Assembly: GCA_002269645.1 (NCBI GenBank)
Contig: NIVC01000987.1
Location: 32,496 to 96,495, forward strand
DNA from: Macrostomum lignano
Lineage: Eukaryota
Length of the DNA: 64,000 nucleotides
Reading direction: 5' to 3'
This document shows, one piece after another, positions 8,037-64,000 of this stretch. Position 1 is the first letter of the stretch. The number at the start of each line of letters is the position of its first letter. The position numbers were made by a program, and so were the translations under genes. The notes under the pieces were generated by a model, which worked only from the letters and a program-made list of their open reading frames with translations, had not been told where the DNA came from and did no database searches.

Positions 8037-8037
8037 A

Positions 8038-8072
<35 letters not shown>

Positions 8073-8081
8073 CATCAATCA

Positions 8082-8112
<31 letters not shown>

Positions 8113-31103: not shown

Positions 31104-31460
31104 TTTTTTTTTATTAGAGGCAGGGGGGTTGTGTGCACCCTGGCGCACTTTAAGCGACATAGGCACACAACCGGCGAGAGGCATTACTGCCCATTCCACC
31201 GACTCCCCTGAGCAGGCATACAAGCGCGCGGATACGTACGCAGGCACACACTCACACAGGAGTGTACAGCGGCCCTAACTTTATTTTATCGTTAGGCATG
31301 TACACTTCACTGCGCCTTGGGGGGTTTGGCTCTCAAGGCCGTTAATTGCACGAGCAGAGCCAAGCCGAGATTCCAATTCAGCCCAAAATTAATGTGACTG
31401 CACTTGGAATCGAGCCTAAGTCGCTGGCACACCAGACAGCTGCGCTACCGTGGGCCACGG
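31104..31460 (-). mobile_element. tRNA-derived SINE, near full length, head fused to the NHL pseudogene
   Basis: Reverse complement of the 32869-33226 family; poly(A) tail at 31104-31112; head CCGTGGCCCACGGTAG..GGCTCGATTCC. Confidence 0.85.
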
Positions 31461-32635
31461 TGGAGGCTGCAGGCGACATGGCGGAGCTGCTTCGCCTGGT
31501 CCAGTCCATGCACGAATCGCTTGGAGACTTGGAGGCCGACTTTGAGAGGTCAGAGCGCCTGCTCAGAGACCAGAGCGACAATGAGGAGCTGCAGCTGCGG
31601 CTTCTGGGCCAGCTCGAGCGGTTGGTCGGCATTTGTGCGGGACGCAGTGAAGAGGGCGACTGGTCGAGAGACGCTGCGGTGACCGCAACATCCGAGGAGA
31701 TAGACAGAGATATAGCCGCTGAGAGAGAGAGAATGTTGGGGCCGATGGTTTTCAGTCATGAGGTGAAGCTGGATGGCCCTGTTAATTGGCTGGCTGTGTG
31801 CAGCGACACCAGCGGATTCGTTGGTGACCGCTCAGGCCGTGTGGTCCCCGCCGACTCAGTGAGAGAACGCAGAAAAGCACTGCATCATCCCTGCATCTTT
31901 GCATCATTCTATCCGAACAGAGACCACCTACTGGTGCTGTCTGTGGACGGCTCAAAGAAGTTGCGGTGCCAATGCGACATCGACTGGAAGAAGCACATAT
32001 GGAGCCTTCACTGCGACCGTCAGCTGCTGTTCATTGCTCAGCATGACGCAGTGACAGTGACGGATCTGAGCGGTCGCGCGGTGCGTCGTGTCTTCCACCA
32101 CATTGAGGGCTTTTGTGACATCAGGGGAATCGGCAGCAACGTACTTTCCCTGTTTGTGTCCAGTGGAAACAAAATTGCTGCACTCAGCAAAGCGACTTGG
32201 TAGATGGAGACGGTCATCACGCTGTCTCAGCTTCCTGATGCTCGATTGGGCAACTTGGCGACTCACGACAACTGCATTCTGGTGACAGAATTGACGCATA
32301 GTCATGTACACAGAGTGAGCATCGACACCCAACAGCTGGTCGCCTCCTTCCCGACTCAGCGTTCCGGCCTCCACCAGTTTGCTGGTACAGTGGATGTGGC
32401 CGTCGACAGAAGAGGCCGCCTCTTCGTGAGTGATTGGTCGCGTCATTCAGTGCGAGCGGTGGCTGCAAACGACGGGTCGTTGCTGTGGACTCTGGGGACT
32501 CCGGGCGAGAGCGACAGAGGTGACGGAGGATTCACGTATCCATTGGGTCTGGCGATGGTGACGGGAGGTCCGCGTGAGCAGCTGGTGGTGGCTGACAGTT
32601 ACAACAGGAGACTACAGGTGTTCAGTGCATCCTGA
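31453..32635 (+). pseudogene. 5'-deleted coiled-coil/NHL-propeller pseudogene (copy C)
   Basis: Collinear with copies A/B from EAAGDMAELL onward; lacks the Zn finger and first coil; TGG TAG ATG at 32198-32206 where A and B have TGG CAG ATG. Confidence 0.9.
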
Positions 32636-32868
32636 TTTCATTCTCAGGCCGAATAATAATCGAACTGTGGGGTTTCTGGGAGTGGTTGATTTAATTCAAT
32701 TGTAGGCTGAATCTTTCTTTTGGCTCTTTTTCCTATTTTAGATTTCTTCAGATTCAATGGCTGTGCTTGTCCAATAAAGATCGATATTTCTATGGTCAAT
32801 ATATTTAGAATTTGTCATTTATTGAAATGAAGTACATTATAACCTTCAGCTGCATAAGTCGTAGCTAC

Positions 32869-33226: not shown

Positions 33227-33384
33227 TTCGTTGCTAAACTTATTACAGCTTTGTCTAAGAACATCAGTTTTCCTGGAAAGTTGCAACCTTCTCGATTAAG
33301 TGTTCATGCAAAACTTTATTACTGTACATCAAAACCCTCTCAAGCATATACTTTGACTTCCGGTTGGGCTAACCTTAAAGTTCT

Positions 33385-35486: not shown

Positions 35487-35804
35487 TTAATTGTATTGTC
35501 TTTTGTTGAAGTTTATAATTTGCTGAGTTGATTTGTAAGTATCCAATGATTTTCTGCTGATTTATTTGCAAGAGGAGGAGAATTCATCCAGACACTTGCT
35601 CACAATTTATATTTTTTGCTATAGTGCATTTTTCAATGCTTTAATGGGAAGAGAAATGAAAATGAAGACTGTTTTATTGGTCTTGGAATTTCATGGCTTG
35701 GCCTCTCAGCTCATGGACGTTTAAATACTTGTATCCTCATGTGGACAATGCAGCTGCTTAGGGCTAACCTTCAGTGTCCTAGATAGTCCTAAGTGCTTAC
35801 TGAC

Positions 35805-38800: not shown

Positions 38801-39620
38801 TCGGCGCTTTTATGCCCTTGTCGACGTCAGCCAGAAGCTTGTTGCATCGGGCACAGAGTGCTGCAGGTAGCTGCTCATCATTCGCATTGTAGTTGGGCAA
38901 AAAGTGTGCCTGAATGCGTTTCAGCGAGGCATTACCTATTCGTTGCATTGATGAGCCCTTTTTGTAGCACAACAAGCAGATCTTGAGGCGATTTTCTTCG
39001 TGTGATAGTGCATGCGTTGCATGGCTCATTTCTTTATACATGTATGGCAAGGTGAGTAGAAATATTGAAAGTAGGCTTGATCGAAGCTCACTATGGACTG
39101 CAAGTCAAGTCACTAACAAATACAGGTCGAGCTTGGTTTGTGAAAAGAAATCGTGCCTTGCAGAATTTATTATCAATTGATTTTATTATACAAGTAGGAA
39201 GCATACAACCAACATGCCTATAACAATCTAGAGTCAAGTACACTGGACAGAGCATACTCAAGCTCATGGGCCAGAGGGACCAAATTTGAGTACATTGGCA
39301 AAGCCACACAACCCAAACCCCCGCTGAGTTACATGAAACTTTATATTTGTTGCATCATCTAAGTTGGTTTACTAAAATTGAAATCGGCTATCACTGGTTT
39401 AACTTACATGTACCTTGATCTACGGTTCTACTCATATGTACAATCAATGCAAATCATACATTATCACAAGCTATGGAATGAAGTACTTATGAATGGAGAT
39501 AGCTCGGTAGATTTTTTTAAAATTGCACGTATACCTTGCTAAGGTTCAGGTGAATGCATAAATCACTGTCATTTGAGGCTGACTTTATTTTCACCTTGAG
39601 AAGGCTTCAGGACATGTGTG
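35805..39620 (-). mobile_element. Full-length Chapaev (CMC superfamily) DNA transposon, 3816 bp
   Basis: Ends CACACATGTC...GACATGTGTG; imperfect TIRs 35805-35944 and 39481-39620 (~80-85% identical by my count); identical 4-bp flanks TGAC (35801-35804, 39621-39624); internal transposase ORF. Confidence 0.93.
36909..39041 (-). CDS. Chapaev transposase (~710 aa, uninterrupted)
   Basis: N-terminal H-x7-C-x2-C (HEENRLKICLLC) ... LPAALCARC Chapa-type Zn finger; RNase H-like triad candidates GIDSGGG, AVDMKI, SEQVVE; CPWC, LHLLLG and TPKVH motifs. First ATG at 39041 (the track starts at TTG 39050). Confidence 0.9.
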   Translation of the reverse strand: MYKEMSHATHALSHEENRLKICLLCYKKGSSMQRIGNASLKRIQAHFLPNYNANDEQLPAALCARCNKLLADVDKGIKAPNVLPNSSEVVKVSPTKITRQSSSCACKICETARFNPIGKGLGKWKPEPHSLGRPACSDPDHGLPPAQPVVICQRCHSMVGRGLPHYCTQTQRRENLFSKLSLDRRGAEIHASDVIKAKAASTGSNSRFQLATRGRDLTVCVGQRAGSSTSMRGGCAVPAEEFSRFQQTLCLSGRQTKLAAQFFRAWKGRKSIEPNLRSKLSAIDSALDDLFELTNLEMDCAKGKREMRSIVFCTDPLALIDRVMARRQVSADDGALIKVGIDSGGGFLKFCVSIVSAQGLKDQPTGSRSTYAEGACRFHFEDGGVRKLLLLAIAESVSESYDNLQQILNLLNLQGFSFCAAVDMKISNAILGLQCCSSTHPCPWCETARIDFSNPDRTNVLRSIGGIRLQAFEYQRTVEEKAPRNVSAAAFKNCVRPPLLEVPDSTMVLQAIPPMGLHLLLGVTNRLFEELETQLRGLEDCQISTDDWLQQLGLRRPLQNGGNFAGNACECLLNGVDILIAMLAQHNVFSAMPVAHALRCFRDVKASCFGMSVCGDFENRVRAFEQAYIDLGIRVTPKVHAVIDHVVQFLNMSNLAGEPKKGLGFWSEQVVETAHHDFSSMWQDFRIDFHHPSYPDRLRKCVVAYCSRHA

Positions 39621-44170: not shown

Positions 44171-47100
44171 ATGCATGGCACACAATTTGCCAGTGATGAC
44201 AATTCTAATGACTATAATGGGCTAATAAATGGCAATGTATCTGGTCAAATACTTTTGCCTGTTGCATCTGGATCTCATAGCAATAGGAATGCTTCAACTA
44301 CTAATATATCTGCAAATTTGCCAAGCAGAGCTAGTCCAACTAATAACAATGATGATGTGTTTGTGAAGCATCATAGATCAGTAGTTCAACAAGATGGCAT
44401 TGAGCCAGCTCAAGTTCAGGCTGTTTCAAACCCTATTTATGGTGAGTGTAGAAAGTACATTTAATTGTTTTTAGGTATTGTCTCTGAGAAAACTCTAATT
44501 GGGAAGTATTAGGGAAGATTAGAAAGAATCTGAATGAAAAATGTAAATAATATTGATAAGATTTTGAATGTGAAATGTTAGTGGAATCGGGAAGAATCTA
44601 AATGGGGAATGTTGGTGGGATTGGGAAGAATCTAAATGGGAAATGTTGGTGGAATTGGGAAGAATCTAAATAGGAAATGTTGGTGGAATTGAGAAGAATC
44701 TAAATGGGAAATGTTGGTGGGATTGGGAAGAGTCTAAATGGGAAATGTTAGTGGGAGTGGGATTGGGAAGAATCTATATGGGAAATGTTATTAGAATTGG
44801 GAAGAATCTAAATGGGAAATGTTGGTGAAATCAAGAAGAATCTAAATTGGGAATGTTGGTGGGATTGGGAAGAATCTAAATGGGAAATGTTGGTGGAATT
44901 GGGAAGAATCTAAATAGGAAATGTTGGTGGAATTGAGAAGAATCTAAATGGGAAATGTTGGTGGGATTGGGAAGAGTCTAAATGGGAAATGTTAGTGGGA
45001 GTGGGATTGGGAAGAATCTATATGGGAAATGTTATTAGAATTGGGAAGAATCTAAATGGGAAATGTTGGTGTAATTGGGAAGAATCTAAATGGGGAATGT
45101 TAGTGGGATTGGGAAGAATCTAAATGGGAAATGTTAGTGGGATTGGGAAGAATCTGAATGGCGAATGTTAGTGGAATTGGGAAGAATCTAAATAGAAAAT
45201 GGTGTTGGAATTGGGAAGAATCGGATTCGGAAATGTCAGCCTAAATATCCACTTCGCAATCCCAAATTAATTGCCAACAGTGAATCTGGACATCAAAGTT
45301 GAAGATGCGGATCAAACCGCTGTGGAAAGCGCCTGCGGAAGTTCATCATCAGACGAATCTTCAATTTTTGTGCCATTCTCATTTCGAGCATTGAGTAGAA
45401 AACGAAAACTGCTGCTCGTATCGCTTTGCCTTGGCGAGCTGTGCTCAAATGTTATGTTATCAATTATGGCACCATTTTTTCCTAGCGAAGCTGAGTCCAA
45501 AGGCGTCTCAAGTACGGTTAGCGGATGGATATTTGGTGTTTTACCATTGGCTCAAGTAATATTCAGCCCTATTGTTGGTGAGTGACTCCTGTTAGTTGAC
45601 TGACATTATGTACATCGTAGCTGAGCTAGGGGCTGCCCATTTCACCGACTCCCTTGAGCAGGCACACAAGCGCGCGGATACGTACGCAGTCATACGCACA
45701 GGCACACACTCACACAGGAGTGCACAGCGGCCCTAACTTTATTTATCATTAGGCATGTACACTTCACTGTGCCTTGGGGGTTGGCCTTCAATTGGGAGCT
45801 AATTGCACGAGCAAAGCCAAGCCGAGATTCCAATTTAGCTCCAAACTAGCAATCTGGTGCCCCCTTCGGGCGCCCAAAAAAGCAAGGGACAAAAACATTT
45901 ATATAAATCCTATCTGCCTTGACACCCAAGCAATTCCCCCAGTAAGCCTCGACATCTCAGCGATTCCCCCGAGCAAGCATCTCCTCAGATAGCAAGCATC
46001 CCCCCGATATCAAGCATCCCCCCAGATAGCAAGCATCCCCCCAGATAGCAAGCATCCCCCCAGATAGCAAGCATCCACCCAGATAGCAAGCATCCACCCA
46101 GATAGCATCTCCCGGATTCTCCCCAGATAGCAAGCATCCCCCAGATAGCAAGCATCCCCAGATAGCAAGCATCCCCAGATAGCATCTCCCCAGATAGCAA
46201 GCATCCCCAGATAGCATCTCCCCAGATAGCAAGCATCCCCAGATAGCATCTCCCCAGATAGCAAGCATCCCCAGATAGCAAGCAGATATCAAAGCGCCGC
46301 GCTTAACCACTGGACTGTTCATAAATTTTTTACTACTAACTATAAACTAAAAGTAGAAATCGAAGCAAATTGTTGCCTAAATTAACCAGGGTGTTTTGAT
46401 GGATCAATATTTAAGCACGATCAATAATCGTGCAATTTCTTGAGAGGAGAAGACACAAGAAATAAGAAGATATACGAGATAAGAGATGGCGAGAAGAGAG
46501 CTGAGAAGAGACATTAACCTTAATAACGGGCCGGATTGTTATTGTAAAATTTCAAGAACTTGAGTATATTTTAAAATAAAAAATCCAATTTTTACTAAAC
46601 TACTAGCAGTAGAAAAACAGTAGAAGTAAATTGCTACCCTAATTCAAAAAAAGCAAACAAAACTCATACTGAATCCCATTTTCAGGCGCCATGATGAAGC
46701 CTGCCGGCGTGAAGTTCCTCTTCCTATCTGGCGCTTTCTTGGGCGGTTGCGCCACTATACTATTTGGTGCGTTGGATCATATGCCTAGCCGGGACGGCGG
46801 TCTCATGTTCATTATTTATTGCTTTGCAATACGAATAACTACAGCTTGGGGCTTCGCTTCCTATACAACCGCCGCGTTTGTTATCATAGCGCAAGAGTTT
46901 GGCGACAACGTGTCTCAGGTGTTTGGCATTGCTGAGACTTTCTGCGGCATTGGCGCCGTATTAGGACCGGCTGTTGGCGGCGTTCTTTACGGCTGGGGCG
47001 GCTTCGGCCTGCCTTTCTTTGTGCTGGGCGGCATCTACCTGCTCACTGTGCCGCTCAGCTGGCCGCTCATCCCGTCCGATGCAGAGTCTCATCACGGACA

Positions 47101-50100
47101 GGTGTCCAACTTCACCCTGCTGAGGGTGCCAGGTGAGCTCTCGGATTTTGTGTCTGTCTGTCTGCCTGTCTGTCTGTCTGCCTGTCTGTCTGTCTGTCTG
47201 TCTGCCTGTCTGTCTGTCTGTCTGCCTGTTTTAGTGTCTGTCTGTCCGTCTGTCTGTCTGTCTGTCTTAGTGTCTGTCTGCCTGTCTGTCTGTCTGCAGC
47301 AGCCAGCTTCCCCCACCCCTCCCCATCAGGCATCCTCATGATGTGCTGGACAGTAATAGTGCTGGGAACCGGCTGGTCAATATTCGAGCCGGTGCTGGAG
47401 CCTCGCTTAGGCAGCTACAACTTGAGTCCTCAGCTCATCGGTTTAGTCTTCCTACTGACTGCCTCATCCTACGCTTTATCCGCCCCGTTATTCGGTTGGA
47501 TTACTGAACGGATTGACGATTTAAATCCGTTGATTCTGGCCAGTCTAGCCGGCTGCACCGCCTGTTTAGCCATGCTGGGCCCGTCGCCTTTGTTCACTAA
47601 CAATGCACCGGATAGCGCTACTGGCAGTCTGGCTCTGATCATTGTGTCACTGGCTCTGCTGGGCCTGTTCAACTCTATGGGCATCGTGCCGAGCTATGAG
47701 TATATGCTCGATGCTGCGGAGTGAGTGCAGTTTTCTTTGGGATGTCATTGAAATCTAAATGGGATTTGGTTAGTTCACGAATGGGATTTTGAGATTTCTG
47801 GGATTTCTTAAGATGGGATCTTCTGAGATTTGTAAGGATGGGATCTGGGGATTTCTAAAGATGGGATATTCTGGGGATTTCTAAAGATGGGATCTTCTGG
47901 GGATTTCTAAAGATGGTATCTTCTGGGGATTTCTAAAGATGGTATCTTCTGGGGATTTCTAAAGATGGGATCTTCTGGGGATTTCTAAAGATGGGATCTT
48001 CTGGGGATTTCTAAAGTTGGTATCTTCTGGGGATTTCTAAAGATGGGATCTTCTGGGGATTTCTAAAGATGGGATCTTCTGGGGATTTCTAAAGTTGGTA
48101 TCTTCTGGGGATTTCTAAAGATGGGATCTTCTGGGGATTTCTAAAGATGGGATCTTCTGGGGATTTCTAAAGATGGGATCTTCTGGGGATTTCTAAAGAT
48201 GGGATCTTCTGGAGATTTCTAAAGATGGGATCTTCTGGGGATTTCTAAAGATGGTATCTTCTGGGGATTTCTAAAGATGGGATCTTCTGGGGATTTCTAA
48301 AGATGGTATCTTCTGGGGATTTCTAAAGATAGGATATTCTGGGGATTTCTAAAGATGGGATCTTCTGGGGATTTCTATAGATGGGATCTTCTGGGGATTT
48401 CTAAAGATGGGATCTTCTGGGGATTTCTAAAGATGGTATCTTCTGGGGATTTCTAAAGATGGTATCTTCTGGGGATTTCTAAAGATGGTATCTTCTGGGG
48501 ATTTCTAAAGATGGGATCTTCTGGGGATTTCTAAAGATGGGATCTTCTGGGGATTTCTAAAGATGGTATCTTCTGGGGATTTCTAAAGATGGGATCTTCT
48601 GGGGATTTCTAAATATGGGATCTTGATATTTCTAAAATGGAATCTTGGGATTTCTAAAGATGGGATCTTCTGTCTGGGATTTCTAAAGATGGGATCTTGG
48701 GGTTTCTAAATTTGGGATTTTTTTGGATTTTTAAAGATGTGATTTTTTGGGATTATTTTGGAAATAATATAATTATTATTAACAAATTTTCAGAGAAGCT
48801 GGCCTTCCAGACGACGTGTCCGTTCACGGAGCAATTGGCGGTCTGTGGGGCTCGGCCTACGCGTTCGGGTAAGATTTACAAATCATATTCGCTACTCATT
48901 ACTTATTCAATTTGAGTAGTATTAAATCTATGTATTAGTAATTATCGAATTATAATCTGATTTTCAAAATCTTTTAACAGCGAATTTGTCGGTCCCATTG
49001 CTGGCGGCTTTCTGGTTGACATTTCTTCGTTTGGCTGGGCCACCACCGCAGGCGCTGGCCTCTCTTTGATATCAGTAATGCGTTTTTCACGGCTTGTTTA
49101 TTATTTGTTTTATTGTTCCGAACTTGGACTAATTTCTCGTGACCTTGGATGACCCCTTGGTTCTCTGTTTCTTGGGGCGTGTGCTTGCCACCTTGACCTC
49201 AGTTAACCCGTAGTTTTGTGTTCCCGCACGCACACATAAAGCATGTTATCTCGATCGGATGACCCTGTCCATGGATCCCTTAATCTAAAACCCTAATCTA
49301 CCTACCCTAATCTACTTCCTCCGTGACCTCAGATGACCCTTCTTTGCTCATACATGTACTTCGCTAACCTAAAACCCTCACCCCGTCACCTCAGATGACC
49401 CTGCTCACGCATCGCTAACCTTGTGACCTCAGATGACCCTGCTCACGCATCGTTAACCTACAACCCTCACCCCTGTGACCTCAGATGACCCTGCTCGTGC
49501 ATCGCTAACCTACAACCCTCACCCCCGTCACCTCAGATGACCCTGCTCGCGCATCGCTAACCTACAACCCCTCACCCCGTGACCTCAGATGACCCTGCTC
49601 ACGCATCGCTAAGCCACAAACCTCACCCTGTGACCTCAGATGACCCTATTCCTAGTGTTCGTGCTCATCCAGCGCTACCAGAAGCGATTGCACCGTCGCA
49701 CGGCCGTCAGCGCCGCGGCCGCTGCCACAGTTGACGCCGTTACCGCCGTATCGACAGCCGCAGGCGCCGCCACAGCCGCCGCAACGCTGGTCCAACCGGT
49801 GCCATTCCGACGTCGCTCAGTGTCGTTCCTTCGTGCCACCAGCCTGCTGCAGCTGCAGCGGCAGCGCTCAATGCAGGCCGGAGCCGCCGGCTCTTTTGTC
49901 GACGGTTGTCGGACGCCATCGTCGGATGTCGGAGGCTACCGACACCGGCTGTTGCCCAGGCGTCAGCGTCGCTCTACGTTGGATCCTCGGCGTCGAAGCA
50001 ACGATCGACGTTTTCGCCGCGGCGTCAGCGTCGGCTGCGAAGACGACGACAACAACGACATCGGCAACCTCGGTGGTGAGGCGTCACCGGCCACTTCAAC

Positions 50101-51609: not shown

Positions 51610-52290
51610 TGTGCTGTGCTGTGACCAATCCATCCTTACAGTGTGCTGTGCTGTGACCAATCCATCCTTGCAGTGTGCTGTGCTGTGACCAATCCATCCT
51701 TACAGTGTGCTGTGCTGTGACCAATCCATCCTTACAGTGTGCTGTGCTGTGACCAATCCACCCTTACAGTGTGCTGTGCTGTGACCAATCCATCATTAGT
51801 GTGCTGTGCTGTGCTGTGACCAATCCATCCTTGCAGTGTGCTGTGCTGTGACCAATCCATCCTTACAGTGTGCTGTGCTGTGACCAATCCATCCTTACAG
51901 TGTGCTGTGCTGTGACCAATCCATCCTTGCAGTGTGCTGTGCTGTGACCAATCCATCCTTACAGTGTGCTGTGCTGTGACCAATCCATCCTTACAGTGTG
52001 CTGTGCTGTGACCAATCCATCCTTACAGTGTGCTGTGCTGTGACCAATCCATCATTAGTGTGCTGTGCTGTGCTGTGACCAATCCATCCTTGCAGTGTGC
52101 TGTGCTGTGACCAATCCATCCTTACAGTGTGCTGTGCTGTGACCAATCCATCCTTACAGTGTGCTGTGCTGTGACCAATCCATCATTAGTGTGCTGTGCT
52201 GTGCTGTGACCAATCCATCCTTGCAGTGTGCTGTGCTGTGACAAATCCATCCTTGCAGTGTGCTGTGCTGTGACCAATCCATCCTTACTC
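51610..52290. repeat. 32-bp minisatellite (CAGTGTGCTGTGCTGTGACCAATCCATCCTTA)
   Basis: About 21 copies. Confidence 0.95.
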
Positions 52291-52819: not shown

Positions 52820-53460
52820 TTTCGAGGAAATAAATGGTGTCTCGGGTAATCTCTCGGCATGTCTCGAGGAAATAAATGGTGTCTCGGGTAATGTCTCGGC
52901 ATGTCTCGTGGAAATAAATGATGTGTCGGATAATGTCTCGGCATGTCTCGTGGAAATAAATGATGTGTCGGGTAATGTCTCGGCATGTTTCGTGGAAATG
53001 ATGTGTCGGGTAAATGTCTCGGCATGTCTCGTGGAAATAAATGATGTCTCGGGTAATGTCTCGGCATGTCTCGTGAAAAATGATGTCTCGGGTAATGTCT
53101 CGGCATGACTCGTGGAAATAAATGGTGTCTCGGGTAATGTCTCGGCATGTCTCGTGAAAATGATGTGTCGGGTAATTTCTCGGCATGTTTCGTGGAAATG
53201 ATGTGTCGGGTAAATGTCTCGGCATGTCTCGTGGAAATAAATGATGTCTCGGGTAATGTCTCGGCATGTCTCGTGAAAATAAATGATGTCTCGGGTAATG
53301 TCTCGGCATGTCTCGTGGAAATAAATGATGTGTCGGGTAATGTCTCGGCATGTCTCGTGGAAATAAATGATGTCTCGGGTAATGTCTCGGCATGTCTCGT
53401 GGAAATAAATGATGTGTCGGGTAATGTCTCGGCATGTCTCGTGGAAATAAATGATGTCTC
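52820..53460. repeat. 42-bp minisatellite (GTCTCGGCATGTCTCGTGGAAATAAATGATGTCTCGGGTAAT)
   Basis: About 15 copies; explains six overlapping ORFs. Confidence 0.95.
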
Positions 53461-55039
53461 GGGGCAATACATGTGCAGCAAATTTGCGCCCCCGATGTCT
53501 ACTGGGTAATATCTAGGCCGGACGCTACCATCTGCTGGGCATCCACCGTCTCTCCCTGAGGCAATGCAGTCACTTGTTGGTTGTGAACATGACCATCAGC
53601 AGGGACTTCCGCGCTTCGTCATGGAATTTGGGCTTAGGCGCACCACCTGCTTCCGGGGCTCTCCACTTTCAAGCTAAGTCTTGTCAGTCTTGGTTCCATG
53701 AGCATCCCAGGAACCCATGTCTCGTCTTGCACAGCGTACAAATTGTAACTTTCCTCCTTTATCCCTAGCAGAACCCGTCGCAATTGTGTAGCATAGTTGA
53801 CTCGCATCTGTCTCTGCTCATCCGTGAGGTTGTGGGGTTACCCACACTGAACACAACACGCCCACCTCAGCTGCAGGTCCTCTCGGAGGATGCGAATTAT
53901 TGGGACTTCTTGAGCTTTGGGTACGTAAAAATACTTCTGATTTTTAGATTTTTCTGAAACTTTCGCCAGACTTTCAGTGGGTGTCCAAAATGATAATAAA
54001 GCAAAAAGCTGCACAAAATTAGAATCGGGTTTTAGCAGAGTTATAGCTTAAACAACAAGACTTTTGTTCAACCCGGACCCGTAGTAAAAGATTTTCGTCT
54101 TGAAAAAACGGGTGGCATACACAAATGGCCAGTTAAGTGAACGCGTACAAATGTAAATTAGTAAGTTTTAAATTTAACAAGTAGCTATACATGTAGGTAA
54201 AAATATGATTATGCCTGAAAACCTGCTTTGTTCTTGTAGTGAGCCACTGGATTAATGGTGGTGTCTCACTTTAGTTAGCAGTTTCTCTCGCCCTCGCTCC
54301 TTGTTTCTCTCTCTGTGCAGCGGTCACTACTGGCTTCACTGGTGGGCCGCTTTCCATTCATCGCTTTCCATTTCCAGCCAATCACATGACAAGCTCTGTT
54401 TCCGCAGCAGTCCGAAGTACAGGGAAACCTCCGCGTCAATTGCTAAAAATGGCAGCAACGTTACGCGATCTGGCGCAACGGGGTCTTGCGTGCGATGGTG
54501 CAATAGATCCCTGCCTATAAATGCGAACCCTTTCACCCTTGGTTCTGTCGAAGAGTCTCGAGTCGCTAGTTTCTAAGTTCTTCAATTCTGTCCATTCTAA
54601 TTTCTCCTCGTGTGCATTTATCCCCCTTGCTATTGGCTTGCCTGTCCAAACCTAGACCCTGACCTCTGAGGCTGCTCGGAGGCTGGCATCGCCCTCCCAG
54701 CCGACCCACTGAGCCCAGCAGGATCTGCTGACTATTAGTCTGAAATCGCAAATCCGCGTGAAGTGCTGTGTTCGCTTGTCTTGGTTAGTTCGTTCCGACC
54801 GGATCCTCAACTCACCGACGGCTGAGACCCTAAGGGACCGGTGGCAGCACTACCTACGCTACTAGAAGGCTTCCAATCAGAAAAGACGGAGAGCCACTCA
54901 CACCGTGCAAGCGCAGCTGAGAAGCACAGGCATAACATTCTTATCTTCCAATATGCTAAAAATCATCTCTCCCTTCTGCCTCTCACTGCATTAGTTTTTA
55001 ACTTCATCTGCATTTCAGCTCTTCACAAACAATCCAACA

Positions 55040-56695
55040 ATGAGCCTTGAAGACTTCAGCGACAGCTCGAGTTCGGACGCGCCTCCCGCTTCCCCAACTC
55101 CACTCTGCATCATCTGCGACCAAGCTGCAGTCGGTGTGGCTCCGTTCTCCCGCTGCCACATGTGCAGTCAACACCTCAGTGTCGATGTGGCCAATCTATT
55201 CAAGCTCAAGGAAGAGGTCGAAGAGCTGCTGCTTGCCTACTCACAAGAGTCACAAGACTCACAAGAGTCACAAGGCGCAGCAGGTGCAGCTGGCCGTGCA
55301 GCGCTGCTGCGACACCGACAAGACGCTGAGTCGCTGCGTAGTCTCGCTCTCGACATCCAACAGCAGCTGCAAGAGGTCAATCACAAATTCGATTTGGTAC
55401 AGCAACACATCGATTCGTTCCGTAGCAGGGTGACGGGCCAGCTCTCAGGTGTGCTTGAGGCAGTGCGTGTGTGCGAGCGGGACCTCGAGGACATCTCCAG
55501 CTACAAGCAGGAGGTGGCCACGGCGGAGGCTGCAGGCGACATGGCGGAGCTGCTTCGCCTGGTCCAGTCCATGCACGAATCGCTTGGAGACTTGGAGGCC
55601 GACTTTGAGAGGTCAGAGCGGCTGCTCAGAGACCAGAGCGACAATGAGGAGCTGCAGCTGCGGCTTCTGGGCCAGCTCGAGCGGTTGGTCGGCATTTGTG
55701 CGGGACGCAGTGAAGAGGGCGACTGGTCGAGAGACACTGCAGTGACCGCGACATCCGAGGATATAGACGCTGCTGAGAAAGAGAGACTGCTGTTCGATCC
55801 GATGGTCTTCAGTCACGAGGTGAAGCTGGATGGCAATGTTAAATGGCTGGCTGTGTGCAGCGACACCAGCGGATTCGTTGGTGACCGCTCAGGCCGTGTG
55901 GTTCGCGCCGACTCAGCGAGAGGCGGCAGCGAGGCTCTGCCTCAGCCCTGCATCCTGGCATCATTCTCGATTTTTGATAGGAAGGACCACCTACTGGTGT
56001 TGTCTGTGGACGGCTCACAGAAGCTTCGGTGCCACTGCGATATCGACTGGAAGAATATAATCTGGGGCCTTCACTGCGACCGTCAGCTGCTGTTCATTGC
56101 TCAGCCTGACGCAGTGACAGTGACGGACCTGAGCGGTCGCGCGGTGCGTCGAGTCCGCCCACAGATTGAGGGCTTCGGTGACATCTGTGGAATCGGCGGC
56201 AACACAGCCTCCTTGTTTGTGTCCAGTGGAAACAAAATTGCTGCATTCAGCAAAGCGACTTGGCAGATGGAGACGGTCATCACGCTGTCTCAGCTTCCTG
56301 ATGCTGATCTGCGCAACTTGGCGACTCACGAAAACTGCATTCTGATGAGGGACTGGATTCACAAGCAGGTGCACAGAGTGAGCATCGACACCCAGCAGCT
56401 GGTCGCCTCCTTCCCGAATCAGCGTTCCGGCCTCCACCAGTTTGCTGGTCCAAGCGATGTGGCCGTCGGCAGAAGAGGCCGCCTGTTCGTGAGTGAGTTT
56501 TCGGGTCACTCAGTGCGTGCTGTGGCTGCAGACGATGGGTCGCTGCTGTGGACTCTGGGGACTCCGGGCAAGAGCGGCAGCGGAGACGGCAGATTCAGCA
56601 GGCCGTTGAGTCTGGCGGTGGTGACGGGAGGTCCGCGCGACCAGCTGCTGGTGGCTGACTGTGACAACAGGAGACTGCAGGTGTTCAGCGCTTAG
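55040..56695 (+). CDS. Zn-finger (CxxC..CxxC) + coiled-coil + NHL beta-propeller protein, TRIM-NHL-like, copy A (551 aa, single coding exon)
   Basis: CIICD..CHMCSQH, long heptad-rich region, NHL repeats FAGPSDVAVGRRGRLFVSE and FSRPLSLAV..LLVADCDNRRLQVF. Confidence 0.88.
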   Translation: MSLEDFSDSSSSDAPPASPTPLCIICDQAAVGVAPFSRCHMCSQHLSVDVANLFKLKEEVEELLLAYSQESQDSQESQGAAGAAGRAALLRHRQDAESLRSLALDIQQQLQEVNHKFDLVQQHIDSFRSRVTGQLSGVLEAVRVCERDLEDISSYKQEVATAEAAGDMAELLRLVQSMHESLGDLEADFERSERLLRDQSDNEELQLRLLGQLERLVGICAGRSEEGDWSRDTAVTATSEDIDAAEKERLLFDPMVFSHEVKLDGNVKWLAVCSDTSGFVGDRSGRVVRADSARGGSEALPQPCILASFSIFDRKDHLLVLSVDGSQKLRCHCDIDWKNIIWGLHCDRQLLFIAQPDAVTVTDLSGRAVRRVRPQIEGFGDICGIGGNTASLFVSSGNKIAAFSKATWQMETVITLSQLPDADLRNLATHENCILMRDWIHKQVHRVSIDTQQLVASFPNQRSGLHQFAGPSDVAVGRRGRLFVSEFSGHSVRAVAADDGSLLWTLGTPGKSGSGDGRFSRPLSLAVVTGGPRDQLLVADCDNRRLQVFSA

Positions 56696-56871
56696 AGAAG
56701 GACTTAAAAACCCTTGAAAATGTAGTCGAGTAAATTAAAATGTATTCCTTTTATATTTTGACTATGGCTTAATAACCCTAAGACTCCTAATGCGTATATG
56801 TTATCTACTCAAAGCAGTGGCTACAAATATGAAAATCTGCATGCAATATAATTTTTACTTGTTTAAGTATA

Positions 56872-57142
56872 CTCAGCAGCATTGAAAAGTCGCCACTCTA
56901 TGCGCCAGTGAGCAATTTCTCATTGACTATTCTGAAATAAAAGATACGCGAAAACTGATGGTGTGGCTTTAATCCGTCCAACCCTTGCACACCGCTCCCC
57001 TACTTCGTTCCTCAACTCAAGTCTGCCGCGGCGTAGCCGAGTTGCGCGTCACTCGTAAAGATTGAGAGACTTTGCCTGCACTCTGAAAAGTGGCTACCAC
57101 AGACGGAATCTTCTGTGATGGCGACTTTTCGATGTTGCTGAG
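56872..57142. mobile_element. MITE with ~24-bp TIRs flanked by TA(TA), Tc1/mariner-like
   Basis: TATA|CTCAGCAGCATTGAAAAGTCGCCA ... TGGCGACTTTTCGATGTTGCTGAG|TATA. Confidence 0.7.
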
Positions 57143-59182
57143 TATATATAAGATCATGACTCAATTGTACAAATTTCACAAAAAGTACTCCTAAAACTAA
57201 GAATTGTAAACAGCTTTTGGCGATTAGTTTGTTTTTTAATTTTTTTCCTCGGATACGCGAATAATAGAAAAATTGCGCAGTAAACTGCCATGGCTCATGC
57301 TAGTGCCATTTAACTTTAGCTAGAGAGCTTCATGACTTCTCTGACTCACCTCCCCCATCCTAGAGTTCAGGTGACTGGTCGCTCTCACGTTAGCTCTTAG
57401 GTCTTAGCTAGTAAACCTGCGACTTTAACTGGTAATCATTTGTACATGTAATATTCTGAAATAAGAAATGTATACAGACAAAACATTATTACGTAAGGCC
57501 ATCAATGCTTAAGGGTGCAAAGCAGCTACAGGTGACACTGCTTTAAGGTAAATTATTCCTGTGTACAATGTATGTGTCCTCTGTGTTCTCACAAAGAATC
57601 CTCTGTGTTACGTTGAGACTTGCGGGATCCAGAGGCGGCGTGTGTGGTTGTGGCTGACTGATGAAGGTCTGTCTGTACGAGATCTGACCAATTTTAGTGG
57701 TCATATTCTACATGTATGTACTAGCTTACCTGTCAGTAGCATAATAAACCTGATCTTATTGATGCTTAATTATAGGCTAATTTGTATGAAAAGCATGATT
57801 ATACGAGTAATTGAGGTTTCCTGGAAACTAGGATGATGTCCACGTGTACAAAGTATTAATTCAATTTTAAATTACATGTACATCTAGGTAGGAAGCGATG
57901 CATGTACACTTTCGAGCTACGTGTGATTCGATAGAAGTTGCATCATGACCATATGGCCAGTTGCATTAAGTATGCATAATTTGAACATCGCATATGGATG
58001 AATGAGTTTTACCATGACAGACAAATTGGGTGAAGAAAATTCCGATTGGACGCCATGCTTTGTGCCAGCCTGCTGGAGGGGCCGCGGCTTCCCGTTGCCT
58101 CCTCACCCACAACCCACAATAATTTTTCGAGCAGAAAAGTGGAAATATTAATTTCTGAAAGCAGCTCGTGGTCTTCGTATATGGCTTTCTATGAAAAACT
58201 GTCATTTTACACTAGTTGTGCAGTGAAAGATTCATTTTCGTATTTTTTTGAGCCAAAAGTTGTAACTACTCACAATTGTGACATTGGCTGAAATTTTGTT
58301 TTGTTCCTTAATCAAGTATTATTTGTAATAAAAATGTAGGCTGGGGCCTAGCTTAAAAATTGATAGATTTCAATTTAGACCCACAAAGACATGCGGGCCG
58401 CAAAGCCTCTCTATCCGGCCCTCCGTCCTTTGAAACTTCACAATAGCAATCCGGCCCGCTCAAGGTTTGAGTCTCTTCTCAGCTATTTCCCTAATCTCCT
58501 CTCCCTTTTTATATATCCCCTCTCTCCTCTCTCCTGCCTTCTCATCTCCGGTCTTCTCTCTCTCTCCTACACTCTCCCCTCTCACCTCTCTGCCCTCCTC
58601 TCCACTCCTCTCTTCCCTCTCTCTTCTCTCTCCTCTATCTGGCCCTTCAGTTAAAATAGTTCGCCGACTTCTGATTTAGACAATATGAAAAATGATATTC
58701 GTAAACATTGTCTACATTCAATTATTCAGACTGGTCTAGGAACTACATGTATACCTATAATAGTGGCGTAAATTTTTATTACTTGAAACAAAAAGTTAAT
58801 GTATTCGTAATGCCATATAAAATTTCATAGAACAGATATAACACGCTGCGGATGCTAAATTAAAAAATGGTAACCATTCATTTTGTGATGAAGAAAATGA
58901 TTTTTCTCTAAAAATTGCCAAGACCTTGGATATACAACAGTGGTCCTTAACTGAAGGAAGGCGGTTAAAAGAGAAATGACATCAGATTTATTTGACATCG
59001 GTTCTAACAAAGAAACCAATACGTGAGAAAAAATGATAAATTATCAAAAGTCGTTATGCATTTGAATCAAGTAAGCTGCAGTGCACACTGAGGGGGCGAT
59101 TTGGAGAAAACCGCAGAAGCAAGCGACTGATAAAAATGAATGAGCAGTTAGAGGGTCAAAGCCTGAGTTTGATGAACAGTAG

Positions 59183-59615
59183 AACTACCAAGGGGGGGAT
59201 TAACCCCCCCCCCCCCCCCCGACAATTTTTTTGCTGCGCCGGTGTCCGGCATGTCCGGCAGTTGAGGTTTGCTCATTTTTGAAGCTTGATGAGAAAAATC
59301 TGATAAGTTGCAATAGTGTGTCCATAGTCGCCTGGTGTCATCTGTTCAAGGCCGTGTCCATACTTGGTGCCACCTGTTAAAGGCCCAGAAGCTCCGTCTG
59401 GGTAAAGGCCAGTAACCAAGGAAGTCAGAGCTGATGCAGACACATGTGATCGATGTGCTGATGAAATTTGAAGGCTTGGCAAGGCTGCACTGAGGCGCAG
59501 TGCTGATTGGAGCACAGGGGTGTACTGAATACACTGGCGCTTATGGGAAAGAATCGACCTTCTGGCAGAATCGCAGAATCGGTCAGTATCTCGACGGTCC
59601 CCCCTCTTGGTAGTT
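59183..59615. mobile_element. MITE-like insertion with TIRs AACTACCAAG(G/A)GGGG
   Basis: AACTACCAAGGGGGG ... CCCCTCTTGGTAGTT; absent from the paralogous segment near 61545-61560. Outer limits may be 59177-59640 (CAGTA..TACTG). Confidence 0.65.
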
Positions 59616-60013
59616 AAAACGGGAGAAAACCGGCTTACTGTTAAGAACAGGGTGATTTGGAACTTTCCAGGAAAAGTTGCACAGACACAAAATGGGATTT
59701 TACTGAAACATGAGACATCTAGAAAAAAACCAATAGGAGAGGTGTTGAGGAAAATACAAGTTAAATTTCATTCAATAAATATCAATTCTGAATTTGCTGG
59801 ACATAATAAAATATTATCAAACAAAAAGAATTAAGTTTTATACAATTTTTGAAAATGTGATGAACTTCTTTGTTTTGATAATATTTTTATTATGCCCATT
59901 GCATGTATATTCAGAATTGATATTTATTGAGTTTTTCCGAAAACCCGTCTTCCAATAAATCAATCACTCAAGAAACCCCACATTTCGATAAATATTCGGC
60001 CTGTGAAAAATTT

Positions 60014-60130
60014 TTAGGATGCACTGAATACCTGCAGTCTCATACTGCCACCGTCAGCCACCACCAGCTGCTCGCGCGGACCTCCCGTCACCACCGCCAG
60101 ACACCATGGACTACTGAATCTGCCGTCTCC
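60014..60130 (-). pseudogene. 3' remnant (38 codons + stop) of a fourth NHL paralog (copy D)
   Basis: Translates GDGRFSSPWCLAVVTGGPREQLVVADGGSMRLQVFSAS*; its 3' flank aligns with those of copies B and C. Confidence 0.9.
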
Positions 60131-60199
60131 TTCTGAGAATGAACCATTCTGTCCTTTTCTTGACTGCCAAGATCTCCGTAATCTTCCCCCTTTTCTTTG

Positions 60200-60470
60200 A
60201 TTAAAACCCAGTCACTCCGAACCCCTTTCACTGTGAAACCCAGTCACTCTGAAACCCATTCACTGTGAAACCCAGACACTATGAACCACTTTCACTGTGA
60301 AACCCAGATACTATGAACCACTTTCACTGTGAAACCCAGACAATATGAACCCCTTTCACTGTGAAACCAAGACACTATGAACCCCTTTCACTGTGAAACC
60401 CAGTCACTACGAACCCCTTTCACTGCGAAACCCAGTCACTATAGAACCCCTTTCACTGTGAACCCAGTTG
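60200..60470. repeat. ~32-bp minisatellite (CACTGTGAAACCCAGACACTATGAACCCCTTT)
   Basis: Tandem repetition next to the copy D breakpoint. Confidence 0.9.
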
Positions 60471-61896
60471 CTGTCGCGTGTCACGTGTTACCAAAAAAGG
60501 ATGAGTATTAAATCTACATGAAAATTGACTTTTTGCATGTACACTCAATTGTGCTATCAATTTCAACTGTCCAAAGCACTTATATTTGAACAATTATTTC
60601 CCAGCTAAAAGTACCAGTTCCCATGCATAGAAAACACACAGCAGTGACCCATTGAGGAAAATGCAACACAGAAGCGAGCGCTGAGTCTGCAGCTGTGAGT
60701 GAAATATTTCAATATCTTGGCGTCAGGGACTCTCACTGCAGTGGCTGTCTGTGATTTCTATTCCGAGTGTCAGAGCCAAAATAGCTGAGGCGGCAACTCA
60801 ACTGACTTTTCCTGATGATGCAGTCACACGGGTGACTCGCAGTCTGATGTATTTGATGCTGTCACCGCAGTGATGCCGGCTCTTACAACAGAGAGTGCAG
60901 TGCAAGGGCAGCCACTCCAAGTCAGGAGTTTCCGAATATTTTTGCTCGCTCTGAGGTTCTGCTGTCAGGGCGACCCAGCAGTTCGATCCGGTGTGTGTGG
61001 AGGAGAGGGAGTGCTTTGCTAGGATCAGCTGGGTTAATCTGCTCACTCTGAGTAGTTCGGCTGTCTTCTGAGGCTGCCAGCTCAGGTCGGAGAAAGTTTA
61101 GCGCACGTGCGAGGGAGGGAGGGCGGAGATTCCCGATTGGTTTAAGCTGCGGTTTTACAGCATTTTTCAGTCTTTCGCATTGGGAGATTTACATTGCACC
61201 TTGCTGCTTCCTATTGGGTGAGACTGGGATCGCATCTTCAGCTTCTGCTTTTTTGAGCAGTTTCATTGGCTGGCAATGCACTCACAGCTGGATAACATTA
61301 TGAATTCAGGTGAGGCAGTTAGAAGAGAAATGACATCAGATTTGACATCAGTTCTGACACAGAAAAGATGACGCGCAGAGGCTGCATTAATATCAAAGAA
61401 AAATTGATACAACATCAAAATTGCTTTGCATAATTGTATCAATTAAGTCTGAGTGCAAGCTAAGGGGGTGGTTTGAAGAAAACCGCAAAAGCGAGCGACT
61501 GATAAAAATAAATGAGCAGTTTGAGTGTCAAAAGCTGGAGTTTGACTGAGCACAGGGTGATTGGGAATTTCCAAAAATGATTCACAGGCACAAAATTGGG
61601 TTTTTGGGTCTTTGCTGAAATTCAATTCAACAGTCAAGTCCCATTTTCTGGTGCTGAAACTTCTAGAAAAAGAAAAACTATGAGAGAACTGTTGAGGGCC
61701 AACGTAAGTTTAATTTAATTACTGAATGCAATAAATATCTATTCTGAAGTTAGTGGACATAATAAACAATTATCAGACAAAGGTCATCGCATGTAAAAAT
61801 CCTATAATAAGAAAAACTCGACCAAAACCCGGTTTCCATAAATCAGTCACTTATAGAAACCCCACAGTTCGAGTATTATTCGCCCAGTGAATAAAA

Positions 61897-63561
61897 TTAG
61901 GGTGCACTGAACACCTGCAGTCTCATGTAACAGTCAGCCACCACCAGCTGCTCGCGCGGACCTCCCGTCACCAACGCGAGACCCAATGGACCAATGAATC
62001 TGCCGTCTCCGCTGCCGCTCTCGCCCGGAGTCCCCAGAGTCCACATTGGCGACCCGTCGTCTGCAGCCACCGCTCGCACTGAGGGACCCCATTTTTCACT
62101 CATGAACATGCGGCCTCTGCTGTCGACGGCCACATCCATTGGACCAGCAAACTGTTGGAGGCCGGAACGCTGAATCGGGAAGGAGGCGACCAGCTGCTGG
62201 GTGTCGATGCGCACTCTGTGCACCTGCTTATGCTCCCTGTCGATCACCAGAATGCAGTTTTCGTGAGTCGCCAGGTTGCCCAGTGCAGCATGAGGAAGCT
62301 GAGACAGCGTGATGACCGTCTCCATCTGCCAAGTCGCTTTGCTGAATGCAGCAATTTTGTTTCCACTGGACACAAACACGGAGGCTGCGTTGCCACCGAT
62401 TCCCCAGATACCACAGAAACCCCGAATTTGTGGGCGGAGTCGACGAACCGCGCAGCCGCTCAGGTCCGTCACTGTCACTGCGTCGCGCTGAGCAATGAAC
62501 AGCAGCTGACGGTCGCAGTGAAGGCCACGAATGTCCTTCTCCCAGTCGATGTCGCAGTGGCACCGCAGCTTCTGTGAGCCGTCCACAGAAAGCACCAGTA
62601 GATTGTCTCTGTGATAGAATGATGCAAGGATGCAGGGCTGAGGCAGAGCCTCGCTGCCGTCTCCCGCTGAATCGGCGGGAACCACACGGCCTGAGCGGTC
62701 ACAAACGAATCCGCTGGTGTCGCTGCACACAGCCAGCCATTTAACATTGCCATCCAGCTTCACCTCGTGACTGAAGACCATCGGATCGAACAGCAGTCTC
62801 TTTCTCTCAGCAGCGGCTATGTCCTCCGATGTCGCGGTCACCGCAGCATCTCTCGACCAGTCGCCCTCTTCACTGCGTCCCGCACAAATGCCGACCAGCC
62901 GCTCGAGCTGGCCCAGAAGCCGCAGCTGCAGCTCCTCATTGTCGCTCTGGTCTTTGAGCAGCCGCTCTGACCTCTCAAAGTCGGCCTCCAAGTCTCCAAG
63001 CGATTCGTGCATGGACTGGACCAGGCGAAGCAGCTCCGCCATGTCGCCTGCAGCCTCCGCCGTGGCCACCTCCTGCTTGTAGCTGGAGACGTCCTCGAGG
63101 TCCCGCTCGCACACACGCACTGCCTCAAGCACACCTGAGAGCTGGCCCGTCACCCTGCTACGAAACGAGTCGATGTGTTGCTGTACCAAATCGAATTTGT
63201 GATTGACCTCTTGCAGCTGCTGTTGGATGTCGAGAGCGAGACGACGCAGCGACTCAGCGTCTTGTTTTGGTCGCAGCAGCGCTGCACGGCCAGCTGCACC
63301 TGCTGCGCCTTGTGACTCTTGTGAGTCTTGTGACTCTTGTGGCTCTTGTGGCTCTTGTGAGTAGGCACGCAGCAGCTCTTCGACCTCCTCCTTGAGCTTG
63401 AATAGATTGGCCACATCGACACTGAGGTGTTGACTGCACATGTGGCAGCGGGAGAACGGAGCCACACCGACTGCAGCTTGGTCGCAGATGATGCAGAGAG
63501 GAGTTGGGGTAGCGGGAGGCGCGTCCGAACTCGAGCTGTCGCTGGAGTGTCCAAGGCTCAT
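61897..63561 (-). CDS. Zn-finger + coiled-coil + NHL beta-propeller protein, copy B (554 aa, single coding exon)
   Basis: Same architecture as copy A; N-terminal half nearly identical. An upstream 5'-UTR intron is suggested by a gtaagt donor near 63899 and an acceptor just before the ATG. Confidence 0.88.
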   Translation of the reverse strand: MSLGHSSDSSSSDAPPATPTPLCIICDQAAVGVAPFSRCHMCSQHLSVDVANLFKLKEEVEELLRAYSQEPQEPQESQDSQESQGAAGAAGRAALLRPKQDAESLRRLALDIQQQLQEVNHKFDLVQQHIDSFRSRVTGQLSGVLEAVRVCERDLEDVSSYKQEVATAEAAGDMAELLRLVQSMHESLGDLEADFERSERLLKDQSDNEELQLRLLGQLERLVGICAGRSEEGDWSRDAAVTATSEDIAAAERKRLLFDPMVFSHEVKLDGNVKWLAVCSDTSGFVCDRSGRVVPADSAGDGSEALPQPCILASFYHRDNLLVLSVDGSQKLRCHCDIDWEKDIRGLHCDRQLLFIAQRDAVTVTDLSGCAVRRLRPQIRGFCGIWGIGGNAASVFVSSGNKIAAFSKATWQMETVITLSQLPHAALGNLATHENCILVIDREHKQVHRVRIDTQQLVASFPIQRSGLQQFAGPMDVAVDSRGRMFMSEKWGPSVRAVAADDGSPMWTLGTPGESGSGDGRFIGPLGLALVTGGPREQLVVADCYMRLQVFSAP

Positions 63562-63609: not shown

Positions 63610-63875
63610 CAGTGAGAGAAAGATTAAGAGAAGGGGAAGAGACGGGGAAGAGAGGTTCAAGAGAGGGAGAAGAGAGGGGGAAGAGAGGGGGAAGAGAGGG
63701 GGAAGAGAGGGGAAGAGAGGGTGAAGAAAGGTTTAAGAGAGGGGGAAGAGAGGGGGAAGAGAGGGGGAAGAGAGGGGGAAGAGAGGGGGAAGAGAGGGAG
63801 ACGAGAGGGGGAAGAGAGGGGGAAGAGAGGGGGAAGAGAGGGGGAAGAGAGGGGGAAGAGAGGGGGAAGAGAGGC
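63610..63875. repeat. GA-rich array (GAGAGGGGGAA)n
   Basis: Direct repeats. Confidence 0.9.
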
Positions 63876-64000
63876 AGTTCAGTTGAAGCCAAAACTTACT
63901 GATTGTGGATTTCCATCTAGAGAGCTGCCCAGCCCAGTGCTGCAGTGCCAGTGACTGACAGGCGGCCCACACGAGCTGCCTTCATAGCACAGGCACTCAC

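Follow-up and report, generated by a model that had tools for sequence, protein, structure and literature searches.

A Macrostomum-specific tandem gene family joins a homogenized zinc-knuckle stalk to a putatively diversifying NHL-type propeller

A 64,000-nt stretch of the Macrostomum lignano genome (assembly GCA_002269645.1, contig NIVC01000987.1, positions 32,496-96,495 of the forward strand; hereafter the window) harbors members of a tandem gene family whose proteins appear to be soluble and to comprise a CCCH zinc knuckle, a helical stalk of ~180 residues, a disordered linker, and a diversifying beta-propeller of the NHL type. We propose that this family is probably a repertoire of intracellular recognition proteins. 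The open reading frame (ORF) list and a tblastn search with the first gene identify two intact copies in the window (A and B), a pseudogene (C), and a fragment (D). The paralog set analyzed here consists of the window and six loci from the same assembly (~160 kb of loci) and is a sample rather than a census. It holds at least 17 copies, 11 with intact ORFs and 6 disrupted (truncated, frameshifted, or reduced to fragments), in keeping with the birth-and-death family that the original prediction had proposed from the letters of the window.

Averaged over the whole propeller, the ratio of nonsynonymous to synonymous divergence (dN/dS, or omega) stays at or below 1, but its variable sites cluster, highly significantly among the 11 intact paralogs, and lie outside the strand cores; the pattern is thus not the one that would have refuted the original prediction. 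The method of Nei and Gojobori 1986 (NG86) gives a mean pairwise value of 0.80 in the propeller against 0.49 in the coil, and omega for the propeller under model M0 is 0.92. Among the 11 intact copies, comparison of site model M2a with M1a gives 2dlnL (twice the difference in log likelihood) = 252 for the propeller, where 10% of sites are placed at omega 8.9 and 21 sites have a posterior above 0.9. The same comparison for the N-terminal half gives 2dlnL = 17 and is restricted to residues 4-6.

Site classes for blades III-VII were taken from the strand map of an AlphaFold2 (AF2) model alone, independent of variation. Tree-free NG86 dN/dS is 2.25 in the B-C loops (above 1 in 46 of 55 pairs) and 1.67 in the last four residues of the D-A loops, compared with 0.57 in strands, 0.36 in the bottom loops (A-B and C-D), and 0.69 in the remainder of the D-A loop. 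Partitioned maximum likelihood (ML) yields an omega of 4.24 for the B-C loops (likelihood-ratio test, LRT, against omega = 1, p = 4e-4) and 3.18 for the D-A ends (p = 0.004), with 0.6 for strands and 0.4 for bottom loops; the bottom loops (0.36-0.37) are under tighter constraint than the strands. When M1a and M2a are fitted to three segments of ~70 codons, each with its own tree, 2dlnL is 55, 62, and 73, and the same sites emerge. Of the 15 sites under selection in blades III-VII, 13 belong to loops of the predicted top face, a part that accounts for 30% of the region (hypergeometric P = 3e-6), and the remaining two are residues directly next to those loops. Taken with the model, these results argue that the predicted top-face sites are under positive selection and not just relaxed constraint. 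The original prediction had placed the variable sites at the start of strand A and in the B-C loop, and with 11 intact paralogs this location holds; its statement that the strand cores are invariant was too strong, as strands vary (dN 0.057, omega ~0.6), though far less than the hot loops.

Each blade carries at most two variable patches, one in the residues that lead into strand A and lie nearest the central axis, the other in the B-C loop; the usual convention for propellers places both on the predicted top face. As many as 9 different residues occupy a single position in the set of 11 copies, and every copy has a unique combination of residues at its hot sites. These sites are enriched in Tyr (8.5x), Trp (7x), and Cys (3x), as well as in Arg, Lys, Asn, and His (~2x each), and are depleted of Ala, Val, Leu, and Gln, a composition typical of binding interfaces. 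The clustered changes that had been listed for copies A, B, C, and in part D all recur at aligned positions: KNIIWG/EKDIRG/KKHIWS, QPD/QRD/QHD, GDICG/CGIWG/CDIRG, DWIHK/DREHK/ELTHS, GPSD/GPMD/GTVD, EFSGH/EKWGP/DWSRH, SRPLS/IGPLG/TYPLG/SSPWC, and DCDNR/DCYMR/DSYNR/DGGSMR.

The other half of the gene behaves differently. Synonymous divergence (dS) is 0.055 in the N-terminal half (bootstrap 0.039-0.073) versus 0.142 in the propeller (0.119-0.168), or 0.110 (0.085-0.135) once the hot codons and their neighbors are removed, which places the N-terminal half 2-2.6 times below the propeller. Across codons 121-210, dS is 0.009-0.033 over all 55 pairs, copies on different scaffolds included. The nearest neighbors of the copies are not the same in the two gene halves, and mosaic identity tracts are significant. 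This low synonymous divergence, together with the identity tracts, argues that the stalk is kept uniform by gene conversion (concerted evolution) and not merely by purifying selection. The original prediction had described a frozen stalk in which A and C differ at about 1 of 210 nt. The near-identity stands, with exactly 1 difference in 211 nt (nt 486-696 of the A coding sequence, window 55525-55735), but the synonymous sites are frozen as well, and the conversion tracts speak for concerted evolution. The change to high divergence sits within the linker, which is disordered and rich in indels.

Conservation across the superfamily extends to four zinc ligands only. The site has the form C-x2/4-C-x15-16-C-x2-H in nine subfamilies, with C23, C26, and C42 invariant and H45 present in 8 of 9 superfamily subgroups. 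In a search of A, B, and 10 relatives, Pfam gave no RING match at E<=1; in A and B, it gave no zf-B_box match at that threshold either. Some relatives are named "RING-type domain-containing" in databases, yet their sequence has the same single knuckle; likewise, the UniRef name "B box-type domain-containing" is the label of its source and was not reproduced by Pfam here. The family is therefore RING-less, as had been proposed, and the zinc finger of the original prediction proves to be one CCCH knuckle with no demonstrable B-box. A degenerate half B-box is possible. A profile of the N-terminal half searched against the PDB revealed no TRIM, B-box, or RING relationship and no significant likeness to any solved TRIM coil; its coiled-coil matches were all non-significant (geminin, E = 0.025).

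Between the knuckle and the stalk lies a Ser/Gln/Glu/Asp-rich repeat, SQESQDSQESQ (residues 68-87 of A, 55241-55300, with an equivalent in B), whose length differs among copies by multiples of 9 nt in the manner of a coding microsatellite. Residues 199-249 of A are predicted to be disordered (AF2 predicted local distance difference test, pLDDT, below 50), and dN/dS over residues 246-275 is 1.6. No signal peptide, transmembrane segment, or other hydrophobic segment was found (maximum Kyte-Doolittle value 1.1, with a polar N-terminus), from which the proteins appear to be soluble. A secreted or membrane receptor was rejected because no such segment exists.

The C-terminal domain is predicted to be an NHL-type propeller, as originally proposed. 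NHL is the sole Pfam domain detected in A (31.8 bits against a cut-off of 20, residues 468-493), while B has no Pfam NHL match at E<=1. A propeller-only AF2 model of A (residues 256-551) reaches a pLDDT of 93.7 and a predicted template modeling score (pTM) of 0.91. Its best low-deviation Foldseek matches are the NHL domains of Thin/TRIM32, TRIM71/LIN-41, TRIM2, TRIM3, and Mei-P26 (template modeling scores TMt 0.75-0.81 and TMq 0.68-0.75; root-mean-square deviation, rmsd, 3.2-4.0 A), whereas seven-bladed WD40 proteins match more poorly (TM ~0.6, rmsd 7-9 A). The family profile finds the NHL domains of Thin at 1.9e-34 and of TRIM71 at ~3e-33. DSSP assigns 27 strands to the model, arranged in seven A-B-C(-D) units from residues 267, 304, 343, 384, 424, 471, and 522, with an N-terminal closing strand at 256-262 beside them, and Foldseek alignments contain ~40 extra query columns. 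The model may thus have seven blades rather than the canonical six of NHL domains, a seventh blade and an extra sheet being inseparable by strand count.

The six loci are arranged as tandem arrays, and the 54-kb locus L003 alone has 8 copies. The conserved duplication unit measures ~2.0-2.1 kb and covers the coding sequence with ~150 nt upstream and ~290 nt downstream. Two L003 copies on scaffold NIVC01000200.1, L3b (10001-11665) and L3f (34555-36215), have a common 11-nt frameshifting insertion and are 99.6-99.9% identical; the pseudogene-bearing block was therefore duplicated recently. In the public annotation of L003, parts of different copies are fused into one 34-kb "gene" (P0004).

The closest protein matches, all from M. 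lignano, are 73-87% identical and are named hypothetical or "B box-type domain-containing". An exhaustive HMMER search added more full-length relatives at ~30-56% identity, and every one that was looked up belongs to M. lignano; these distant relatives lie in arrays of neighboring genes, as 2-4 near-identical copies. Outside Macrostomum, the propeller alone was matched, by two short metagenome genes (39-44% identity), prokaryotic multi-NHL proteins, and TRIM-NHL proteins. By sequence, then, the tandem family appears to be specific to Macrostomum and of the birth-and-death type. Searches of the accessible literature turned up no paper on Macrostomum and NHL, none that describes positive selection acting on an NHL domain, and none on diversifying NHL beta-propeller paralogs; for TRIM-NHL expansion, they returned vertebrate TRIM surveys only.

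These results show how the family evolves. New copies arise by tandem duplication of ~2 kb, and many decay. Gene conversion holds the 5' half, encoding knuckle and stalk, almost identical, while positive selection drives apart the residues at strand-A entry and in the B-C loop of each blade, giving every copy a unique surface rich in Trp, Tyr, and Arg. As to function, we propose that the top face would bind ligands and that the family would form a repertoire of recognition proteins inside the cell, with a common stalk that may serve for oligomerization or for coupling to one partner. The ligands may themselves evolve fast and would most likely come from viruses, transposable elements, or other genetic parasites. 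Lacking a RING, the proteins would not be self-contained E3 ligases; they would instead bind or sequester their ligands, or work via a partner that the conserved half recruits. A more specific form of this proposal is possible but doubtful, namely that the family is an invertebrate counterpart of the SPRY-TRIM restriction factors, engaged in an arms race with viruses or transposons, with a homogenized stalk leading to one effector pathway and a seven-bladed derivative of the NHL fold.

Several points weigh against a diversifying recognition repertoire. The codon models were our own GY94/F3x4 implementation, not PAML or HyPhy, run on a neighbor-joining tree. Recombination occurs among the copies, with significant identity runs in 12 of 91 pairs, and can inflate LRTs of site models; for this reason the tree-free, partitioned ML, and segment-wise controls were added, and the tree-free and segment-wise ones lessen the concern. 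Copies A and B alone show no dN > dS in their top loops (pN 0.173 vs pS 0.183), so the conclusion of diversifying selection rests on the wider family and not on the window. Top and bottom faces were assigned by strand order in a predicted model, in which blades I-II are ambiguous and contain indels. For the predicted oligomerization of the stalk, the AF2 helices of A (residues 43-76, 83-165, 168-198, and 203-220) come from a monomer model at pLDDT 55-78. Non-coding sequence of the window matches the fetched loci at 84-92% identity, and a protein search with the SLC5-type ORF of the window (see below) matched no M. lignano protein. Finally, six gene ids of the family occur in none of the supplements of PMC5816591, PMC5730564, and PMC12896417, and no paper in the literature searched mentions these genes.

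Among other explanations, a role as RNA-binding regulators similar to Brat and LIN-41 is unlikely, although the likeliest of them. The diversified top faces would then recognize distinct RNA motifs, whether to regulate endogenous genes post-transcriptionally or to target transposon or viral RNA; the explanation overlaps with that of a recognition repertoire, with RNA as the ligand. The closest structures are indeed RNA-binding TRIM-NHL propellers that use the top face, including TRIM71-RNA and Lin41-RNA complexes, and Arg and Lys are among the residues enriched at hot sites. The net charge among intact copies, however, ranges from -4 to +8 for the propeller and from -1 to +5 for the hot sites; with no consistently electropositive face, a uniformly basic, generic RNA-binding surface is not supported, and the enrichment of Trp, Tyr, and Cys suits interfaces with proteins or small epitopes at least equally well. 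We regard as improbable that the proteins serve reproduction or self/non-self recognition (gamete or sperm function, sexual conflict, or allorecognition in an outcrossing hermaphrodite), where sexual selection rather than parasites would be the driver. The family is lineage-specific, and reproduction-related genes of Macrostomum reportedly evolve rapidly (PMC7336406), but direct extracellular recognition is unlikely for proteins lacking a signal peptide and transmembrane segment, the three supplements searched contain none of the six gene ids, and the many divergent paralogs in each genome are more readily understood as a repertoire than as one co-evolving pair.

The absence of any adaptive diversification is very improbable and largely refuted. 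The pattern would in that case result from relaxed loops, mosaic conversion, and decaying copies, or from collapsed haplotypes and assembly errors. A whole-propeller dN/dS no greater than 1 by either NG86 or M0, the presence of recombination, a third of copies being pseudogenes, and a neopolyploid genome (PMC10733133) would all agree with it. Against this, omega significantly exceeds 1 in loop classes that were set independently of variation, dN exceeds dS in the B-C loops of most pairs, the signal survives when short segments are each given their own tree, constraint is tighter in bottom loops than in strands, and only intact ORFs were analyzed. Near-identical copies in six other subfamilies, at the level of homeologs or alleles, differ at only 1-13 scattered positions; hypervariability is therefore specific to this subfamily, and a generic artefact of assembly or polyploidy was rejected. 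Local hypermutation at the hot loops was also rejected, because the synonymous rate scales in partitioned ML are 0.88 for the B-C loops and 1.19 for the D-A ends.

Of known systems, the TRIM-NHL proteins (Brat, LIN-41/TRIM71, TRIM2, TRIM3, TRIM32/Thin, and Mei-P26) share with the Macrostomum family the order of zinc element, long helical region, and NHL propeller, and their propellers are its best structural and sequence-profile matches. The top face is the binding face in TRIM-NHL proteins. The family is unlike them in having no RING, no Pfam B-box, a single CCCH site, and an N-terminal half without likeness to solved TRIM coils; in being encoded by single-exon genes in multicopy tandem arrays restricted to Macrostomum; and in a strand register that suggests seven blade units, not six. 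As tested, then, membership of the TRIM family appears to fail on both RING and B-box. The tempo also differs, as the family evolves fast whereas its NHL-type TRIM relatives form the conserved "group 1", textbook slow-evolving and developmentally essential regulators (PMC2533329). The SPRY-based TRIMs of group 2 are fast-evolving, clustered, lineage-specific, linked to antiviral defense, and described as absent from invertebrates (PMC2533329). The family resembles the group-2 B30.2/SPRY TRIMs (TRIM5alpha, fish finTRIMs) in joining a conserved scaffold, a putative coiled coil, to a recognition domain at the C-terminus, in its clustered, lineage-specific expansion, and in its fast evolution; unlike them, it has an NHL-type propeller instead of SPRY and no RING, so no intrinsic E3 activity. 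In group-2 TRIMs, the surface loops of SPRY are positively selected. The Macrostomum family thus behaves as group 2 yet carries an NHL-type domain.

Two further systems are similar in pattern. In the fungal NACHT/HET-WD40 genes (nwd/het-e), top-face propeller positions are hypervariable at the same place in each repeat and under positive selection, and paralogs undergo concerted evolution and repeat exchange. Those proteins combine WD40 with a STAND NTPase and diversify by repeat shuffling within and between genes, whereas the Macrostomum family diversifies as whole-gene paralogs by point substitution, with conversion concentrated in the non-propeller half. The MATH-BTB and F-box adaptors of nematodes are large lineage-specific families with positive selection in the substrate-binding domain only and a conserved coupling domain; their folds are unrelated to the Macrostomum family, and their coupling partner is Cullin or Skp1.

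Recognition repertoires that evolve fast have been linked to SPRY, LRR, MATH, F-box, or WD40 domains. In the Macrostomum family, it is an NHL-type propeller that bears the full signature of a diversifying repertoire: tandem birth-and-death, omega far above 1 on one predicted face, a paratope-like composition, and concerted evolution of the scaffold. If our interpretation is true, this would be the first NHL-based diversifying family of immune-type receptors. It stands as a candidate innate recognition system for flatworms, a group in which little is known of antiviral and anti-transposon sensing. The family also offers a clean natural case in which gene conversion and diversifying selection split one gene at a disordered linker. 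M. lignano has RNA interference and transgenesis, and with a near-identical stalk, at least 95% alike between copies, one double-stranded RNA could knock down the whole family.

Within the window, A and B are both intronless and convergent to each other. They align over 1729 nt with 91.3% DNA identity and share 483 of 547 protein residues, 233 of 245 in the N-terminal half and 242 of 292 in the propeller. Of the copies on which the original prediction drew, these two are intact; C is a pseudogene that lies outside the 55040-63561 interval it had described, and D is a fragment. The assignment of C follows from its lack of codons 1 to ~159 and from an in-frame TAG at 32201-32203 (KATW*METV). The conserved 3' flank of B is a probable 3' untranslated region (UTR). 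At window 56696-57100, copy A is without this ~290-nt flank, which B and most other copies have, and its homology to B stops exactly at its stop codon; A may therefore have a different 3' UTR or have undergone a recent rearrangement. Copy A corresponds to no called gene in the indexed assemblies. The coordinates of these features are listed in Table 1.

Table 1. Positions of family copies, their parts, and minisatellites in the 64,000-nt window
Feature	Position	Strand	Basis or remark
Copy A, intact single-exon gene, 551 aa (zinc knuckle, helical stalk, linker, propeller)	55040..56695	+	ORF; Pfam NHL; AF2 models
A zinc knuckle, C23-x2-C26-x15-C42-x2-H45	55106..55174	+	Superfamily conservation; C39 and H40 are extras of A's subfamily
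A helical stalk, aa 43-220, homogenized between paralogs	55166..55699	+	AF2 helices; low dS
A linker, disordered and indel-rich, aa 221-255; border of low-dS and high-dS parts	55700..55804	+	pLDDT; indels at nt 729-750
A NHL-type beta-propeller (predicted), aa 256-551	55805..56692	+	Propeller-only AF2 model; Foldseek; site posteriors
A propeller, starts of hot codons	56054, 56057, 56063, 56105, 56186, 56300, 56306, 56348, 56354	+	Site posteriors
A propeller, starts of hot codons (continued)	56357, 56447, 56453, 56498, 56501, 56597, 56600, 56660, 56669	+	Site posteriors
Copy B, intact single-exon gene, 554 aa	61897..63561	-	ORF
B zinc knuckle	63427-63495	-	
B stalk	62884-63435	-	
B propeller	61903-62778	-	
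B 3' flank, conserved; also at copies in loci L001, L003, L004, L005; not downstream of A	61611..61896	-	blastn alignments reach 61611
Copy D, fragment: last blade, stop codon, and ~80 nt of 3' flank, between A and B	59936..60154	-	tblastn; blastn; translation
Copy C, pseudogene	31453..32693	+	tblastn with A
Minisatellite, 58-nt unit	12233-13562		Tandem Repeats Finder (TRF)
Minisatellite, 27-nt unit, 49 copies	13964-15290		TRF
Minisatellite, 26 nt	47796-48751		TRF
Minisatellite, 32 nt	51610-52288		TRF
Minisatellite, 42 nt	52822-53463		TRF
Minisatellite, AATC x164	7476-8132		TRF
Minisatellite, CT-rich	9425-10207		TRF

Copy C is bracketed by an inverted repeat of ~360 bp (31099-31460 and 32873-33231, 87.8% identity), the left copy of which stands in place of its missing 5' part. 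Partial copies of this repeat also occur in the window at 45633-45845 and 19101-19223, and ARAGORN found no tRNA at the repeats around C. This arrangement suggests that a small mobile element, similar to a miniature inverted-repeat transposable element (MITE) or a short interspersed nuclear element (SINE), truncated or captured C. Opposite the propeller part of A (56015-56509, minus strand), B (62155-62577, plus strand), and C (31952-32446, minus strand), long antisense ORFs (140-164 aa) lie at conserved positions; most probably they arise from codon composition. The flanks of copy L6a in locus L006 (scaffold NIVC01001900.1) resemble the window at 85-91% identity in non-coding sequence, at 60253-61286 between D and B (L006 20651-21663) and at 63834-63974 upstream of B (L006 9801-9942), which suggests that the two are not one locus but paralogous or homeologous segments of an array.

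Scans for tRNA and Rfam families over the 64 kb were both empty. On the plus strand, the ORFs at 6471-9243 are parts of a sodium/solute symporter of the SLC5 type (relatives of PF00474) with best matches in molluscs and cestodes at 38-41% identity, and the gene may be unannotated in M. lignano. An intronless ORF of 713 aa on the minus strand (36909-39050) bears Cys-rich motifs near its N-terminus, and its best Pfam match is a weak one to zf-AD at E = 0.04; it may be a transposon gene, either domesticated or active. Finally, minisatellites are unusually dense, with more than 20 arrays scoring at least 400 in TRF, and several give long spurious ORFs on both strands.

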